Assembly: GCA_964036045.1 (NCBI GenBank)
Contig: OZ038378.1
Location: 190,464,001-190,528,000, forward strand
Direction: 5' to 3'
Origin: Eutreptiella sp. 'Long Island Sound 2002'
Taxonomy: Eukaryota; Protista; Euglenida
Length of the DNA stretch: 64,000 bases
A model generated the notes under the pieces. The model searched no databases and was not told the origin of the DNA. It saw nothing but the letters and a program-made list of their open reading frames with translations. This document shows, piece by piece, positions 47,338 to 55,635 of this stretch. The stretch's first letter is position 1, and every line of letters starts with the position of its first letter. A program made the translations under genes and the position numbers.

Positions 47338-50300
47338 TCACCAAGGCTCTTCAACCCACTTGTCCATACTGGGTTGAAACTTCAGTCTATAATCTTGTGT
47401 GCTCATCTTGTGAGGTAATCCTAGTAAAGCGAACAGCTGTTGAAATGCCGCCAATAGGGCACGCAATCGTTTGACGGAATATACTTGTTCTTGTACCACT
47501 AAACAAGTGATCATGCGCTGATTCTCTGGATATCCAAACGTCATGCTCCAAAATATGGTACCCTGAAGGTTCGTGCCTATAACAGGCTTTTCAACCGAAT
47601 CAATAAGCCATACAGTGGGAACATTGTGTTGTAGCTTGCGCATGTCCCGCATATCTGTGACAAACCAGTATGTGACTGGTGTGAGCGAATGCGCCATCAA
47701 GCGCATCTTGGGCAAATACACATGAAAATGCATGCGATTTCCTAAGAGGAACAGCAAAGGCGCATGTGGCCACACTACCCACACTTCAGGGTATGATGCC
47801 CATGAGTGCTTTGGTACTCTGTGCTGGTGCGCGAGTACGAAATGTGTCATGGGTGCCCCATTGAGGGCTGCAAAATCTTGGGTTTGTAACATGAGAGGCA
47901 AGGACGTTGCCTCTCGTAATAACTGCAGAGTGGTAAGTATAAAACCCAACAAACGTTGCTGTTTGGATTCGTTCACTCCCAGCTTTTCCATAGCATGTGT
48001 AGTGTCTGTTGTTGCTCCACCGTCTGGATTGATGCACAAAGAGATGTGATCGACCTGTGCTCCTGGATAATACACACAATGCAACAAAATGGTTGCTGCT
48101 CCCCTTTGTACCCAAACTCCCCAAGGGGTAGGAATGCAATGTTTCCAGGATGGGATGACATCGGGTATCATGACTGCCAATTTGGAATAAACCAAATACA
48201 GTATTACATCTCTGTATGGGCATTCCTCACACATGTGCCTGGAGGTATTCTGCATTCCACACCAGATGCATTGTGCAGGATTTGGTTGCCAGATGCCCTG
48301 TCTGCATGCCACAGTATGTAGATGTGTGTTCCATTGAATGTGCCCATTCATGAGGGCATTAGCATACAAATCATACACTGGCTGTGGGGCACAGTACTCT
48401 ACATCATGAGACTTACAATACAGCTCGGTCAGCTTGGTGTGCACATACTTGTCCCAATTATGAAACTGCTGACCTTTACAAGAAAACGTGATCTGTGGTT
48501 CTTGCAATTCGGAAATCCATCCTATGCTTGGCACTTGTGACAGCGCCGTTTCTTTGGCACAGCTATCTACACTGTCTAGAATGATATCCAACAGTGTACC
48601 CTTTCGATGGGAGTAAATATGCACTGGAACTTGATAGTCTTGAGACAATTGTTTACATGCCTGAAGTAAATCTCTCAAAATGGGTACAGTTTGCTCTGTA
48701 TCTGACTGTAGGGCTGTAACATATGACTTAGAATCTGTATATGTATCCGATTTGGTATACCACACTCCATCTTGAGTTCCCAGCTTCTTTCTCACCAGGA
48801 GTGTTACCCAGGCCACATACATCTCTATGGCAAAAGAGTGGTCTAGGCTGATAGGACAATGTATCGGGTATACTGTGTATTCCATCGTGTCATAATCACA
48901 AATGGCAAGAGCACCTCCTACCCTGCCATCTGATAATCTGGAACCGTCTGTGACAAAGAATGGGCGTTTGGGCAAAAACTTGATGTCTGGCAAAATGGCT
49001 GGACACGGAACTGAGGGCAACAGATCCACATTCGGTAAACAGAACATCCAATCCGGGATGGGCCAGCCAGCTTTTCTAGCCGCTGGCAAATTTTTATATC
49101 CAGCCGTCATCCATTCATGCATATGCACAGCTTGCCAATCATGTGTGCATTTATACATGTTGATTTGTTCATCGATCTGCTTGACATATGCTGGGACATG
49201 AATGCGAATGTTCATGTGATGGGTGTATTTGAGAAATCTGTCATAATCTGTGCTGTGTGAGGGACACATCTTTCCAAAGATATCTGGAACACATGGCATG
49301 CCTGGATGAAAATTCTGAGAGGCTCTCCATATACCATGAGTAACTGATTTCCGGACCAAAGGGTTCAGATGTCCTGCCTGCCTCATGATGGTGATGACAA
49401 ATGTGTGTAACATGGTGACTGTGGCTGGATATATACCAGTCCATCCAGACTGTAATGATTGCATGAAGGAGGCTGAAGGAATTTGACCCCAATTCGCTAC
49501 ACTCCTAATGGCAGAAGCAGCTGCAAAATCACATAATCTCATGGTGGCATGTGCTGGAGGCCTCACTCCTGCTATCCATCGTTGGGTACCTCCTGCACTT
49601 GCTGAGTACATAATCAAAGGGTAATTTGCTGGTAGCCTCTCATATCGAAGAGCAATACTTGCTCTTCTGCATGCTGATAACAACTTGATACAATCTTGTC
49701 GGTGGAAGATATGTGGCAAAACATGTCTTCCCAACAACCTGGCATATTCATTACCGTCTAATAACTGCAGAGTGCTCCCTCCTGCTCGAAAATCGTGGCT
49801 GTGGTATTGTACCTTTCCACCTATCATAGACGCTACTATACCCGTCAGTTTGATTACTGAAGTGTGTAAGTGTGTGTATAGCCCTGCTGTCATCTGTCTG
49901 TCTAACAATTGCTGCATATCTTTTGCGCATTCCAAAACAAAGGTTGTATCATCCATATATGTGACTCTAAGGAATCTCCCTCCTGGACTGATAGGTACTG
50001 GAATCTGATGAGTGATAATGGCGATGCGCAATTCCAGGAGTAAACAGAAAATCAAAGCTGAAACAGGGCATCCCTGTGCAATACCTGCCCGAAATGTGGT
50101 GATGGCTAATTTCACTCCCTTTTTTCCGCCCATAAAAATTTTTGATTTGGTTGCTGCACCCATAATGATAGTGATCCATCGTTCATGAAACCCTGCGAGT
50201 CGTAAGATTTGTTCCAATGTGGGGTGCTGAACAGAACCAAAAGCATGACGAATGTCATCTAACACAAGAAAAACTGTGAGATTTCTGTTCCACCCGTCAT

Positions 50301-52707
50301 TAACATGATCATGTATGACCCTCAATACATCATTGGCTGAAGATTTACCCCATAAGGCAAATTGCGTTACTGGTATGACCTGAGACTGACACAGAAGATG
50401 AGTAACGTGTTTTTTTATACTGGCCGAAAAGATTTTCCACAAAGTGTGGAAATTGAGAAGAGGTCTGGCATTTGCGATGGGACCATGAGGTAATTTATTG
50501 GGGAGAGCGTAAAAGTCTCCCCAATATATACCGTCCATGTCCCCTCCTGCCAACCATGTGTTGTAAAGCTGTACCAAGTGTAATAACTGCGAATCTGACA
50601 AGAAATTCACCATTCGGGCCTCTAACAGGTTTCGAAATGGAGTGGATCGTGGAAACTTTTTGAGCACTTTGCGTAGAAAACTTACCGTAAGTGTGAGAGG
50701 GGGAAATTGAGGGGGATCCCACTGGACCCATTGCAGAATATCATTGCGGTTCATATATAAAGGGGGTGAAAGATGTCGTTGACGAAATTGATCCAATGCA
50801 ACCAAACCAATCATGTCTGCATGTGCATTGTGCTGTGATACATATGTAGGCTCAAGTGATGCATTGTATGGTTGTCGAAATATTTTTCGGTAAAGGGGTT
50901 TTCTAGGTGCTTGCGCACCTGCTGACCCCCCCAAATTGTTGAGGGAAACCCGAATCTTGTTCTCCAAATGTATCATATCCCATGCTCGCCATATCTGTGA
51001 TCTATGCTTCTGTAACTGCTGTGCCTGTGTTATATGTAACCACCACTGTGGGTGCTCTGTGATGTATGCTTGCATTCTTTGCATAGCTTTTTGCACTAAC
51101 ATGGGGGTTGAATATGCATCACATGGCTGCCCAAATACCTGCGTGGCTGCCTGTAAAATTGCATGTGTGAAACTTTTCACCGTGATATCCAATGTGTCTG
51201 ATGCATGCTGTGTGTATTCTTTATCGAAAACTCTCTGGAAATGAGCCAACTGAGTGGCTGTAATTTCCACAGGTATGACATACCTATTGGTAGCATGGGT
51301 GCATTCCGGAGGGGGTAATGGGGTCACATCATATATACTCAGAATTAATGGGAAGTGATCAGAAGGGAACGAACAACGATGAATCACCTGTGTTATAGGA
51401 GGTGTGGTGTGTGTGACGGAAACCATGAAGTGATCCAATGCGCCAACATGCCCCTGTGCTGATACCCATGTGGGTCCTTGTGATTGTTTCTTTACTGGAT
51501 GTATGTTGGTATCTAGAAATGCATCGAGTATGGCTTCTGTGCGGGCGGGGCTGGATATGGGACAATCATTATCCCAACCCGGATTCTGATTGAAGTCACC
51601 ACCTACTACCGTGTACCAGTAGGCAGAAATCAAGAATGGTGCAACCCAGTTCAAGGTTGCTCTTATTTCGTGTGCCTCTGCTTTAGATTTGAGGTACAAA
51701 TTGACTACCTGAAAGGGTTTGTCATTGTACAAAAAGCGAACCACAATGGCTCGATGATCTGGGGAGAAATGTTGCTCTTGCATCTGTATTCCCAACACTC
51801 TGCGTAGCAAAATTGCTACTCCCAATGAATTCCGGTCTGTATGCGTGTGAAATGCCATATATAGAGGATGGAACATGAAATCTGAGGGGAGTTTTCCTAT
51901 CTCCTGCAACATGACAATGTCTGGGAATTCCATCTCTTTAATCCATACATGTAACTGTTTTGTCTTGTCTCGGATACTGATCTGAACATTGAATGATATG
52001 CATCGGACCGGCGACGTCTCATGAGGATTTTTTTCTTGGGCAGTGCAGTGAGGGACTGATACAATGTCCATTGTGTGTAACAGGGATTGTCTCAATCTCT
52101 GTGGCAATTTTCCGGGTATTTTTAAAATCCTGCGTATGATGCGTGGTTTGAATATTGCCACCATGAGAGTACTGGCTGCACCTGTGAGCATTGTATGTGT
52201 GATGGAATACTGTGTGAACCAGTACATAGGCAATATGAGCGAGTGTCCGGTGGGTACACGAATTGCAAATTGTGTACTTGTTTTTGTGCATCCTGAGATC
52301 TGCATAGCACCTTTCAGCTGAATGTAATAAAGCACATCAGCCCATTGAGTTAACAATGGAGCTGGCTGGTGTGTGTGCTTGAAATAATGGATGTGTATCA
52401 ATCCAGCAGGGACTGGCAAAAGAGACAGAAGTTCTGCAGGAACTTCTCGGAAACTTACACACCGGTTGTTCTGAAACTGAAAACCCCACTGACTGTCAAT
52501 GGCATTCCCAGTCAGAGGAGACACATACAATATTACTTGCTGTATCGGAAATTCTGACGGAAAGGGAACTGAATCTGGGGGGCTTTTAAGGTTGCCAGGG
52601 GTTTGGCCATCCTTGCTGTTCAGGTGTAGATGGCCAGGCATGGTTATGTACCGGTGCTTGTTGTGGTGCCCAATGATGCTGTGCATGCTGATGGGGTTGC
52701 CAGCCAC
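47338..52707 (-). CDS. LINE ORF2 polyprotein, 1789 aa: unknown/AlkB-like N-terminus, APE endonuclease, reverse transcriptase, RNase H, CCHC-type finger, unknown C-terminus (first ATG at 52686)
   Basis: APE: SFNV, DIVMLQE, GGDFN, LDHF, SDH. RT: RPL, QFA, LDD..HAF.SV, GIAQGCPVS, YMDD. RNase H: TDGS, AIE, TDSKS, VD..AK. Finger: CIWC...TSRHMCEEC. No stop codons. Confidence 0.95.
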   Translation of the reverse strand: MAGNPISMHSIIGHHNKHRYITMPGHLHLNSKDGQTPGNLKSPPDSVPFPSEFPIQQVILYVSPLTGNAIDSQWGFQFQNNRCVSFREVPAELLSLLPVPAGLIHIHYFKHTHQPAPLLTQWADVLYYIQLKGAMQISGCTKTSTQFAIRVPTGHSLILPMYWFTQYSITHTMLTGAASTLMVAIFKPRIIRRILKIPGKLPQRLRQSLLHTMDIVSVPHCTAQEKNPHETSPVRCISFNVQISIRDKTKQLHVWIKEMEFPDIVMLQEIGKLPSDFMFHPLYMAFHTHTDRNSLGVAILLRRVLGIQMQEQHFSPDHRAIVVRFLYNDKPFQVVNLYLKSKAEAHEIRATLNWVAPFLISAYWYTVVGGDFNQNPGWDNDCPISSPARTEAILDAFLDTNIHPVKKQSQGPTWVSAQGHVGALDHFMVSVTHTTPPITQVIHRCSFPSDHFPLILSIYDVTPLPPPECTHATNRYVIPVEITATQLAHFQRVFDKEYTQHASDTLDITVKSFTHAILQAATQVFGQPCDAYSTPMLVQKAMQRMQAYITEHPQWWLHITQAQQLQKHRSQIWRAWDMIHLENKIRVSLNNLGGSAGAQAPRKPLYRKIFRQPYNASLEPTYVSQHNAHADMIGLVALDQFRQRHLSPPLYMNRNDILQWVQWDPPQFPPLTLTVSFLRKVLKKFPRSTPFRNLLEARMVNFLSDSQLLHLVQLYNTWLAGGDMDGIYWGDFYALPNKLPHGPIANARPLLNFHTLWKIFSASIKKHVTHLLCQSQVIPVTQFALWGKSSANDVLRVIHDHVNDGWNRNLTVFLVLDDIRHAFGSVQHPTLEQILRLAGFHERWITIIMGAATKSKIFMGGKKGVKLAITTFRAGIAQGCPVSALIFCLLLELRIAIITHQIPVPISPGGRFLRVTYMDDTTFVLECAKDMQQLLDRQMTAGLYTHLHTSVIKLTGIVASMIGGKVQYHSHDFRAGGSTLQLLDGNEYARLLGRHVLPHIFHRQDCIKLLSACRRASIALRYERLPANYPLIMYSASAGGTQRWIAGVRPPAHATMRLCDFAAASAIRSVANWGQIPSASFMQSLQSGWTGIYPATVTMLHTFVITIMRQAGHLNPLVRKSVTHGIWRASQNFHPGMPCVPDIFGKMCPSHSTDYDRFLKYTHHMNIRIHVPAYVKQIDEQINMYKCTHDWQAVHMHEWMTAGYKNLPAARKAGWPIPDWMFCLPNVDLLPSVPCPAILPDIKFLPKRPFFVTDGSRLSDGRVGGALAICDYDTMEYTVYPIHCPISLDHSFAIEMYVAWVTLLVRKKLGTQDGVWYTKSDTYTDSKSYVTALQSDTEQTVPILRDLLQACKQLSQDYQVPVHIYSHRKGTLLDIILDSVDSCAKETALSQVPSIGWISELQEPQITFSCKGQQFHNWDKYVHTKLTELYCKSHDVEYCAPQPVYDLYANALMNGHIQWNTHLHTVACRQGIWQPNPAQCIWCGMQNTSRHMCEECPYRDVILYLVYSKLAVMIPDVIPSWKHCIPTPWGVWVQRGAATILLHCVYYPGAQVDHISLCINPDGGATTDTTHAMEKLGVNESKQQRLLGFILTTLQLLREATSLPLMLQTQDFAALNGAPMTHFVLAHQHRVPKHSWASYPEVWVVWPHAPLLFLLGNRMHFHVYLPKMRLMAHSLTPVTYWFVTDMRDMRKLQHNVPTVWLIDSVEKPVIGTNLQGTIFWSMTFGYPENQRMITCLVVQEQVYSVKRLRALLAAFQQLFALLGLPHKMSTQDYRLKFQPSMDKWVEEPW

Positions 52708-54562
52708 TTGTGGTGGGAAGGCGAAAATGCTGTGGATTGGTATCTTTTACCCTCCTGTCTGGTGATGGGGACCTGGATCTAGAACGAGAGTAATGTTTCT
52801 TTCCGTTTTTCTTTCGTTTTGGAGATCGTGATTTCGATCTGGATCGGCTCCGCTTCTTCTTGTGTGAGTTCTCCTTCTTTTTTGTACTGCTCTCTCTCCG
52901 ATTTTTGTGGTCATCGGATTGATCCGATTCACTTGAATCATCATTCCCTTTTTTTTGTTTCTTTTTTCCAGATGAATGGCTGGCTTCTGGCGTAAAATAT
53001 GAGGCTTGATGAAATCCCCTGGGAACCCATGGGGACCAGGGTTGTTTGGTGGCTTTTTTCCAATTGATTCGCCACCCTGAAACGACTGTCATACCTGGTG
53101 TATTGGCTTGATCTTTTCCGTCCTCTGAGACTCCTAACATACAGAAAGACCGTGTGCCTTTCACTGAGTCATCTGTGATGGAGCACAGGTTTTTTCCGAA
53201 TACTGGTCTTAATGCAGTGCCCAAAATCCGGGCAGATATATCATGCTCTGGGGGGTCCATCACTGCATTCCATGCCACAAGGATACATATAGGAAATTTT
53301 GCAGGGTCTGATGACCTGGATTGAGATGTCTGTGCTGCTTGCTGATTTCTGTGTTCTGCCTGCTTGACAATGGTATGACCCGTCGAGATCGGGTCTTGGG
53401 GGGTTTCCTGCTCTGCCTGTGTGAAGAAATCTTTGATAACATGATCCAATTTGGGATGTGTAGTATGCATGTTGAGAGTGTTCCATTGCTCATGTAGATC
53501 CGTAGGTGAGAGGTTACGAATCTCTGGCATGTTCAGGCTGACCGTCATGTGGAGCTTTTTGGCAAAGCCACTGATTTTCTCTGTAGGCTGGTGATTGATC
53601 CATTTCAATAGTTTGTGCATAGGCGGTGAACCTGGAATCTGTGTTTTTACTGTAGGAACTGGTGTTTTATCTTGAGCTGACTGAGGTGTGTTGTGTGTGG
53701 GTGACTCTCCTACTGGATCAGTATCATTCAAATACGTCAGTAAGTTTACTGTAGTGGGCCTGTGCTCTGGTATGAGTGCTGTGATAATGGGAAGCAAGTC
53801 CTGCCTGATACCTGTGACTGCTAAAAAAGTTGAGACAAGAGGAACAGAAGCCATATATTTGGCATGGAGTGGGGGGAGACACGTGAAATTTTCGGGAGAA
53901 GACTCTTTCAAGAGGTCCACCAGACTTGGGGACGGTGGGCCTTCCCACTCACTTGCTTTCTGTCTGATTCTGACCAACATGGCGAATGCATTTGCGAAGT
54001 TCTCTGTGAGCTGTGGAAGCGTTAGTTCAGCTGTTTCGGATCTGTCTCTCATTTCTTGAAGCTCTGCTTGTAGAATCTTGATAGTGCCGTGCAATTCTTC
54101 GATCTGTTTGCTTTGCAATTTTATCGTGTTCTCTGCTTGCCGATGTTGCGTCTTGATATGATCCAGGTCCGCCTTGGTTGTTTCCAATCTTTGAGCATTC
54201 ATACGCTGTGTGAAATGCTCCGGAATGAGAGGTTCTTCCTCTTTCTGCGAAAAACCATCATCCAATGCCTGCAATAGGTCTGCACTCGTTCTGCTTGTTT
54301 TCTTCATGTCCAGCAAATTGGGGCTGTTTAGCAAGTCGATATAGTTGTGCTTTGGCTTGAGCAATGCTGCAGTAGGAGCAGTAATCCATGAAGGTTTTTC
54401 CCCAGGCCAGGCTTCTTCAAAAACCGCTTCTGTTGCCACTTCCAAGATGGATTGGCGAATGATATCTTGAGCTTTGTTCTGGTTCATCGCTTGTACGATT
54501 CCCTTGTTTCTGAGTGCATTTTGCTTGTGCGGAGGAGCCAATTTATCACTTGCCCATGCCAA
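52586..54562 (-). CDS. LINE ORF1-like protein, 658 aa (coiled coil, RRM-like region, K/RS-rich tail); frame is open upstream to 54739 and the track start is TTG
   Basis: Long ORF directly upstream of and overlapping ORF2; heptad-like segment ~53960-54210; RSRSRSKSRSP and SRSRSRSPSPDRR repeats ~52755-52870. Confidence 0.8.
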   Translation of the reverse strand: MAWASDKLAPPHKQNALRNKGIVQAMNQNKAQDIIRQSILEVATEAVFEEAWPGEKPSWITAPTAALLKPKHNYIDLLNSPNLLDMKKTSRTSADLLQALDDGFSQKEEEPLIPEHFTQRMNAQRLETTKADLDHIKTQHRQAENTIKLQSKQIEELHGTIKILQAELQEMRDRSETAELTLPQLTENFANAFAMLVRIRQKASEWEGPPSPSLVDLLKESSPENFTCLPPLHAKYMASVPLVSTFLAVTGIRQDLLPIITALIPEHRPTTVNLLTYLNDTDPVGESPTHNTPQSAQDKTPVPTVKTQIPGSPPMHKLLKWINHQPTEKISGFAKKLHMTVSLNMPEIRNLSPTDLHEQWNTLNMHTTHPKLDHVIKDFFTQAEQETPQDPISTGHTIVKQAEHRNQQAAQTSQSRSSDPAKFPICILVAWNAVMDPPEHDISARILGTALRPVFGKNLCSITDDSVKGTRSFCMLGVSEDGKDQANTPGMTVVSGWRINWKKATKQPWSPWVPRGFHQASYFTPEASHSSGKKKQKKGNDDSSESDQSDDHKNRRESSTKKKENSHKKKRSRSRSKSRSPKRKKNGKKHYSRSRSRSPSPDRRVKDTNPQHFRLPTTSGWQPHQHAQHHWAPQQAPVHNHAWPSTPEQQGWPNPWQP

Positions 54563-55334
54563 CAGATGATGATAAATTTGCAGATAATCCGATCGTGTGA
54601 CAGTGGCAGTGCCTAGTGCCTGTGAATGGTACAGTGTCTGGTAATCGGAACAGTTGTTCCTGAATACACTGTAGCCCAGACTTTTGTAATTCTCCCCATA
54701 TTGTCTTGAGATATACAGGAAGAGACTGTTCCATTGGTGTCAGCACAATGTTCTTGAAGAGTGTAGTATTCACCTTCTTGTATTCTTGTCCCTTAATCTG
54801 CAGGAGCTTGCCAAATGTATCCTTGATCTCACTGTTCTCGATCTTTCGATACGTTTGATCCCACATCTTGACAATATTTTTAATTGATGGTAGCTGCACT
54901 TGTATGTGTGCCAAAAGAGCCGGAGAGCGGGCTAGAGCGATTGGTATGTGTTCCACTTGCTGCTTCTTCTTTTCTTGCATGACTTCAGCTGTCACAGTGA
55001 GCAGGTATCCTTGTGGGGCCAATAGTACATTTATGCTGGAGACATAACTGATCTTGCCGACTATGGTAGTCCATCTGAGAGCATCACAGAGAGCTTGTAC
55101 TTGTATTCCAGGCGCGAATGCAGCTGGTAAAGCACTTTCAGCTTCCTTGTACACATGAGCAGGAGTGAGATCAATGTACTCTGTGAGAAGTCTCTGTAAC
55201 TCTGGGTCTGATGAGTCTGCAAGCAGCTGCAACAAAGAAGCTTGATAGGGGACATGTTCCATGTCTGTACACGGGACATGTAGGAAGTGATGTACTGAGG
55301 GAAATTTGTTCACCGATGAACCTGATTGACACAT
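54546..55334 (-). CDS. LINE ORF0, 262 aa, unknown function; possibly the N-terminal part of ORF1 joined by a frameshift
   Basis: Same strand and composition as ORF1/ORF2; overlaps the open ORF1 frame by 194 nt. Confidence 0.6.
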   Translation of the reverse strand: MCQSGSSVNKFPSVHHFLHVPCTDMEHVPYQASLLQLLADSSDPELQRLLTEYIDLTPAHVYKEAESALPAAFAPGIQVQALCDALRWTTIVGKISYVSSINVLLAPQGYLLTVTAEVMQEKKKQQVEHIPIALARSPALLAHIQVQLPSIKNIVKMWDQTYRKIENSEIKDTFGKLLQIKGQEYKKVNTTLFKNIVLTPMEQSLPVYLKTIWGELQKSGLQCIQEQLFRLPDTVPFTGTRHCHCHTIGLSANLSSSVGMGK

Positions 55335-55635
55335 GACAATATATGTGTATCATATATTGTATAGCTTGTTGAAGAGTAAGGAAAGGGAAGCACTGGCCGC
55401 ATGGGGTATGTTCTGATGAACACAGAGCCACTCTGGCTATTCTATGATAGTGAAACTGACCGCACGGGTTGCACTGTGTGCCTTTCCGCTCTGGTCTGTG
55501 ATCCTAATAACTAATGATTGTGCATGCCAGGTTTCAGGAAACACAGCAACATTAGTTAAAAATACCCTATTTTTTCCTGTAGCCTGATTGTGTCGTTTAT
55601 CCCCGGGAGGCCTGGTACATGTCTCACGTGGAGTA

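Follow-up and report, generated by a model that had tools for sequence, protein, structure and literature searches.

The N-terminal segment of the protein encoded by the second open reading frame (ORF2) of a euglenid retrotransposon is very probably a conserved domain with an AlkB-like fold, judging from the predicted structures of two of its members. The element lies in a stretch of 64,000 nucleotides (nt), here called the window, from Eutreptiella sp. 'Long Island Sound 2002' (contig OZ038378.1, positions 190,464,001 to 190,528,000). On the minus strand of the window it forms a three-ORF retrotransposon without long terminal repeats (non-LTR), that is, a long interspersed nuclear element (LINE). 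The first ~190 residues of the ORF2 protein (ORF2p) would contain a degenerate member of the AlkB-like branch of the 2-oxoglutarate (2OG)/Fe(II) oxygenase fold, a probable pseudoenzyme. A basic helical linker comes next, and the AP endonuclease after it. On the predicted models, we favor with moderate confidence a degenerate, probably non-catalytic AlkB-fold domain that most likely binds nucleic acid.

Predicted fold and conservation of the ORF2p N-terminus

Pfam searches gave ORF2 the layout of an AP-endonuclease-type (APE-type) LINE, an EEP endonuclease followed by a reverse transcriptase. Exo_endo_phos (PF03372) matches amino acids (aa) 238-451 with an E-value of 2.5e-8, Exo_endo_phos_2 (PF14529) matches aa 333-454 with 1.8e-7, and RVT_1 (PF00078) matches aa 746-951 with 5.3e-10. 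About 237 aa precede the endonuclease, in agreement with the ~230 aa reported in an earlier note on this DNA, and in P0042, an ordinary LINE retrieved alongside, the first residue of the endonuclease is aa 7. The region in which that note had placed an oxygenase-like module, 52140-52560, corresponds to ORF2 aa 50-189. The parts of ORF2 are as follows.

47338-52707, minus strand: whole ORF2, intact, an uninterrupted frame of 1789 codons (1789 aa)
52576-52707, minus strand: His-rich N-terminal tail of ORF2, aa 1-44, overlapping the end of ORF1 (frame translations)
52147-52575, minus strand: predicted AlkB-like double-stranded beta-helix core of ORF2, aa 45-187 (AlphaFold2 predicted local distance difference test, pLDDT, ~90 there)
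51997-52146, minus strand: basic helical linker from the module to the endonuclease, aa 188-237 (modeled helices aa 188-195 and 203-216)
51346-51996, minus strand: AP-endonuclease (EEP) domain of ORF2, aa 238-454 (PF03372, PF14529)
49855-50472, minus strand: reverse transcriptase domain of ORF2, aa 746-951 (PF00078)

The AlphaFold2 model of ORF2 aa 40-240 from alignment A2 (model 1) has a mean pLDDT of 84.7 and a predicted template modeling score (pTM) of 0.79. The pLDDT is at least 90 for 98 residues and falls below 50 beyond ~aa 230, and the five models agree with one another (mean pLDDT 81-85). Model 1 starts with a helix (aa 55-66), a beta-hairpin (aa 71-87) and a short helix, continues with strands at aa 104-109, 123-132, 135-140, 146-151, 155-160, 168-173 and 179-186, and ends in two basic helices. 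A second model, of the relative P0020, which is 21% identical to the window module, reaches a pLDDT of 80.7 and has the same strand order (model 2). The earlier note had read the order of a double-stranded beta-helix from short strings in the translation, and each of these strings falls on a predicted strand of model 1.

LIHIHYF: strand aa 104-109
VLYYIQLKG: strand aa 123-132
FAIRV: strand aa 146-151
SLILP: strand aa 155-160
SITHTM: strand aa 168-173
TLMVAIFK: strand aa 179-186

Structure searches with both models point to the AlkB family. Foldseek against the PDB ranks ALKBH5 at the top for model 1 (E 8.6e-6, TM-score 0.47), followed by ALKBH6, ALKBH8, NMAD-1, ALKBH7 and AlkB. In an exhaustive VIA-align search of 48,161 representative PDB chains, AlkB-family chains take 11 of the 14 top rows for model 1, with Z 9.3-10.9 over 132-164 aligned residues: ALKBH5 10.9 (146 aligned), ALKBH6 10.7, OsALKBH1 10.6, FTO 10.6 and AlkB 9.5. 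The other folds in this search include prolyl hydroxylases with Z ~8.5 and small cupins with Z 8-10.4 and only 90-109 aligned residues; the cupins align the barrel alone, whereas the AlkB-family chains also cover the N-terminal helix and the hairpin (132-164 residues). A second look with VIA-align gave Z 11.8 for ALKBH5 (147 aligned, root-mean-square deviation 3.5), 10.9 for FTO, 10.7 for ALKBH6 and 10.5 for AlkB (chain residues 15-212). For model 2 the top 10 are all AlkB-family, led by ALKBH5 (Z 10.8, 163 aligned). The best match of a shape search in the ESM Atlas is a bacterial AlkB cluster (PF13532; TM-score 0.60/0.59, 156 aligned), and the viral library BFVD returned AlkB/2OG oxygenases of giant viruses and AlkB domains of plant-virus replicases, including those of GLRaV-3, a vitivirus and other replicases (E ~1e-6 to 1e-5).

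The window carries a single copy of the module. Elsewhere in the assembly ENA ERZ25074135, different contigs encode at least 16 gene products with 98.2-99.6% identity to the window ORF2. They belong to a 90% cluster of 57 members, a dispersed multi-copy family of near-identical copies that is young and presumably still active. With the module as query, word-index searches retrieved near-identical copies or four fragments and nothing else. An HMMER scan of 1.84 billion representative proteins with ORF2 aa 1-237 yielded 16 matches at E<=1e-3. Real relatives, with identities of 25-61%, account for 14, and several of these continue into the endonuclease. The remaining two are false positives driven by repeats. 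The cleaned alignments A2 and A3 share a coherent pattern over ~170 columns.

A search with the endonuclease and reverse transcriptase part of ORF2 revealed a second intact family, family B (385 members in its 90% cluster), in which module, APE and reverse transcriptase follow one another in the same order. It is GC-rich and is found in the window's assembly at L086:6001-11295. Its representative P0035 (1764 aa) aligns with ORF2 aa 60-1542 at 30% identity. P0035 matches the module profile with E ~1e-10, and the two modules align pairwise with E 7e-9 at 23% identity. By tblastn the endonuclease directly follows the module in L002, L003, L004, L086 and L087, of which L004 is from another sample (ERZ28668930). 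Thus the segment that the earlier note had asked after in related LINEs is present there by HMMER, in family B and by tblastn. The module is kept, always adjoining the endonuclease, in at least six LINE lineages at 21-37% identity, five from the window's assembly, including the second intact high-copy family, and one from another sample. Because it is retained across at least six lineages at such divergence, two of them intact, high-copy and young, we propose that selection acts on a function of the module.

The module alignment has a depth of 15-17 sequences, and most of the relatives in it are decayed fragments. Columns G75, G133 and L159 are invariant among 17 sequences, and Q73, W74, Q130 and P202 are conserved in more than 90%; the conserved columns of the module are QWG73-75, H105, QWA121-123, Q130, G133, L159-P160, F164 and K187. 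The linker (aa 188-237) has conserved K/R columns, P202 and R204, with a pI of 10.9 and nine K/R in 50 aa, and the pI of the module is 8.3-10.3.

We also looked for the element in sequencing runs. The share of its sampled words is 0.87-0.91 in runs of two organisms, 0.51-0.89 in three estuary DNA metagenomes, smaller in others, and 0.20-0.43 in four estuary metatranscriptomes. Contigs of the four metatranscriptomes cover 52115-52887, that is, the module and the junction of ORF1 and ORF2. Over 49600-55400, contigs of the four metatranscriptomes and of several estuary DNA metagenomes carry the element at 95-100% identity, which indicates that the host or a close relative lives in estuaries and may transcribe the element.

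Candidate catalytic residues and proposed function

No column pair in the 17-sequence module alignment reads HxD/E, which confirms across the family what the earlier note had seen in the window, and the HxD that it had asked after in other copies occurs in none of the 17 sequences. The stretch between strands I and III, which in AlkB includes the HxD-bearing strand II, has five residues fewer than its counterpart in E. coli AlkB, and both models place a short loop and a helix there. H105 is the only well-conserved His of the module (12/14). The distal His had been taken as kept; however, H171 is private to the window subfamily, and the relatives have their His at the positions of Y167 (8/14) and T170 (6/14). 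Position 167, just past the short helix of aa 161-166, is likely the distal-His equivalent by strand order and spacing. It is His in those 8 of 14 relatives, whereas the window family has Tyr and family B has Val. Position 112 is T in the window copy and D in 6/14 relatives, position 166 is Q in the window copy and R in 11/14, and position 170 is T in the window copy and H in 6/14. Both intact families have lost the His of the older relatives, and one of them the Arg as well. The two families that are presently intact are thus the most degenerate at the candidate ligand positions, which fits a pseudoenzyme and not an enzyme. At the end of strand VIII, aa 187 is K/R in 10 of 13 sequences, and no conserved basic residue stands six positions earlier, in a register that is approximate relative to R204/R210 of AlkB, the Arg pair (RxxxxxR) with which the last barrel strand binds 2-oxoglutarate.

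As the canonical HxD/E...H ligands are absent and the intact families have lost the His of their relatives, one of them also the Arg, the module is probably non-oxidizing. In our judgment it is probably not a canonical oxygenase. The oxygenase module put forward earlier therefore is supported as to its fold, which is predicted for two members, and unsupported as to oxygenase or demethylase activity, since no metal triad is found family-wide. Presumably retained by selection and probably oxidizing nothing, the module might act through binding. AlkB and ALKBH proteins grip single-stranded nucleic acid by a lid and the barrel mouth. In the proposed mechanism, such an AlkB-type gripping surface and the basic linker would hold single-stranded RNA or DNA beside the endonuclease, either the element's own (template) RNA or the nicked target strand in target-primed reverse transcription. 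We put forward this nucleic-acid-binding role tentatively. The origin of the module may lie in an active AlkB domain that an ancestral LINE carried. A rather improbable extension is that the active demethylase of this ancestor moved into ORF2p and became a non-catalytic 'reader' of a modified or flipped-out base, for example N6-methyladenosine (m6A) on the element RNA, or N6-methyldeoxyadenosine (6mA), hydroxymethyluracil (hmU) or base J in the target DNA. Such a reader would steer the choice of RNA or the choice of the insertion site by the endonuclease.

Several observations weigh against a pseudoenzyme of the AlkB branch. The module has no Pfam match at E<=10, and 15 members have none at E<=1. 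It has no match in phmmer and profile searches of the PDB or in a search with language-model features, and hhalign against 81 bacterial AlkB sequences gives a probability of at most 0.2% in both local and global mode. As no sequence method ties the module to AlkB, the case for homology is drawn entirely from predicted structure. The Z of ~11 is only 1-2.5 units above those of other 2OG oxygenases and some cupins, and the TM-scores against PDB chains are moderate (0.45-0.50). The pocket residues were placed by strand order and spacing, not by superposition, and a non-canonical metal site may exist, such as H111/H113/H171 in the window subfamily or H105/D112/H167 in the older relatives. As to transcription, the contigs of the RNA libraries could derive from contaminating DNA. 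A bacterial-AlkB HMM found no bona fide AlkB in six-frame translations of the window and L001-L004.

The missing sequence signal would be expected of a generic cupin or jelly-roll barrel unrelated to AlkB by descent, whose AlkB ranking is a by-product of how common the fold is and whose job would be a protein-protein contact (e.g. with the ORF1 protein or a host factor) or the spacing of the endonuclease. The Z of 10.4 for the cupin 3-hydroxyanthranilate dioxygenase and of 9.1-9.3 for pirins agrees with this, and a VIA-align Z of 7-8 is common for unrelated folds according to the note of the tool. We nevertheless consider such a barrel unlikely, for the AlkB family fills nearly all top ranks in four independent libraries with two target sequences, and its chains cover ~40-55 more residues than cupins do, among them the N-terminal helix and the beta-hairpin that are typical of AlkB proteins. 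It is scarcely credible that the models are simply over-confident and that the segment, specific to this lineage and in part disordered, is a leader that adopts no defined fold. While the alignment is shallow (15-17 sequences) and its relatives are mostly decayed fragments, the agreement of the five models and their 98 residues at pLDDT >= 90 speak against this, as do the identical strand order of the 21%-identical second target and the alternating hydrophobic patterns that accompany the invariant G75, G133 and L159 across families.

A working oxygenase with a non-canonical metal site is very doubtful in our view. Such an enzyme would remove or oxidize a base mark (m6A or N1-methyladenosine, m1A, in LINE RNA; 6mA or thymine in DNA) and let the element evade marking by the host, by analogy with the AlkB of plant RNA viruses and of an orchid Ty3/Gypsy element. 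The AlkB-like predicted fold and the K/R at aa 187 on the last strand are consistent with it. In the window subfamily the spacing from H111/H113 to H171 is 58-60 residues, similar to the 56 between the corresponding His positions of E. coli AlkB. There is also the precedent of an active retroelement AlkB (PMC9289625). Against this stand the absence of HxD/E from all 17 sequences and the reduction of the HxD strand to a short loop and helix in both models. The window's candidate His is not conserved in the relatives, that of the relatives is not kept in the two intact families, and Pfam 2OG-FeII_Oxy does not match even weakly. The preferred reading remains a degenerate AlkB-fold domain that has probably lost catalysis.

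Remaining features of the element

Two further frames of the LINE lie upstream of ORF2.

52586-54562, minus strand: ORF1, 658 aa; its middle is coiled-coil-like and its C-terminus RS-rich (only sub-threshold Pfam matches)
54546-55334, minus strand: upstream ORF of the LINE, 262 aa (no Pfam family)

Relative to ORF1, the stop codon of which is at 52586-52588, ORF2 is read in the +1 frame (overlap region 52586-52740). The GTG listed as the 'start' of ORF2 is simply the first codon of start type that follows a stop, and M8 (52684-52686) is encoded by the first ATG, ~100 nt upstream of the ORF1 stop. ORF2 may be translated by reinitiation, by a frameshift or from an internal start. We rejected the possibility that the module is untranslated sequence between the two ORFs, as every intact copy, and family B too, has the module and the endonuclease in one frame. 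In family B the ATG of ORF2 is 9 nt past the ORF1 stop, and the N-terminus MAGRNEDIP resembles the V(GTG)AGNPIS of the window. In the copy L001 (L001:3900-4260), the stop that closes the ORF2 frame upstream reads TAC (Tyr), which extends the frame by 78 codons (P0007, 1867 aa).

The C-terminal ~790 aa of ORF2 (aa 1000-1789; 47341-49710) have no sequence match in Pfam or the PDB. This part contains an RNase-H-like 'TDGS' string in which no domain was detected, and we do not assert an RNase H. The C-terminus of ORF1 (52586-52900) consists of a stretch rich in RS/KR followed by a W/Q/H/P-rich tail, and in the decayed sister copy P0017 (L087) a similar RS-rich tail shares the frame of the module, probably as a result of indels. 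A Euglena spliced-leader string does not occur in the window. The ORFs neighboring family B gave nothing relevant in Pfam. Beside family B, L086:14858-17295 contains the start of a very long called gene (2226 aa) that extends beyond the locus; the 812 aa of it that lie within have no meaningful Pfam match.

AlkB-type domains in other proteins and selfish replicons

To our knowledge, LINE ORF2 proteins have few accessory domains, every one of which has shed light on some step in the retrotransposition cycle. Full-text literature searches found no AlkB or AlkB-like domain encoded by a LINE, and AlkB goes unmentioned in a 2026 preprint that deals with epigenetic domains in Euglena retroelements. 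Although AlkB borne by viruses and retroelements is already known, an AlkB-like domain ahead of the endonuclease was found in no LINE paper.

The module resembles the AlkB family (ALKBH5, FTO, ALKBH6 and E. coli AlkB; PF13532) in its predicted eight-strand double-stranded beta-helix with an N-terminal helix and hairpin, of which 142-163 residues superpose with Z 9.5-11.8. A Gly ends strand III in both (G133 in the module), and a basic residue ends strand VIII (K187). Unlike these proteins, the module is joined to a LINE endonuclease, is ~50 residues shorter and has a vestigial strand II, and no iron triad is conserved in it. Its identity to them is 6-13% in the superpositions, and Pfam and hhalign are negative.

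The replicases of plant RNA viruses (Betaflexiviridae, Closteroviridae) likewise have an AlkB fold inside the polyprotein of a selfish replicon. Their AlkB domains keep HxD...H...R and repair methylated RNA, whereas the window module lacks these residues. Among retrotransposons, Ty3/Gypsy LTR elements of Phalaenopsis have an AlkB (2-ODD) ORF that is active in vitro, according to PMC9289625. Like the LINE described here, they are retrotransposons with an AlkB-type domain, read there as an interplay with RNA methylation surveillance. The orchid domain is described there as a recent capture, close in sequence to plant m6A demethylases and encoded by a separate ORF; here, in contrast, the element is a non-LTR LINE and the domain is the N-terminus of ORF2p, old, divergent and without the catalytic residues. 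That AlkB occurs in RNA viruses of plants and in one LTR element of an orchid points to a conflict over RNA methylation. Human L1 is modulated by m6A and the host ALKBH5 (PMC7873242).

A module that is conserved through deep LINE divergence while losing its catalytic residues would be a natural example of how, within a selfish element, an enzyme has become a module for binding. If the reader version were true, it would be an epigenetic or epitranscriptomic reader built by a transposon and derived from an eraser. The JmjC domain of JARID2 is a catalytically inactive 2OG-oxygenase fold that serves as a scaffold. It is similar to the module in that the oxygenase fold has been kept after the loss of metal ligands, whereas it belongs to another branch of the superfamily and to a host chromatin protein, not to a protein of a transposon.

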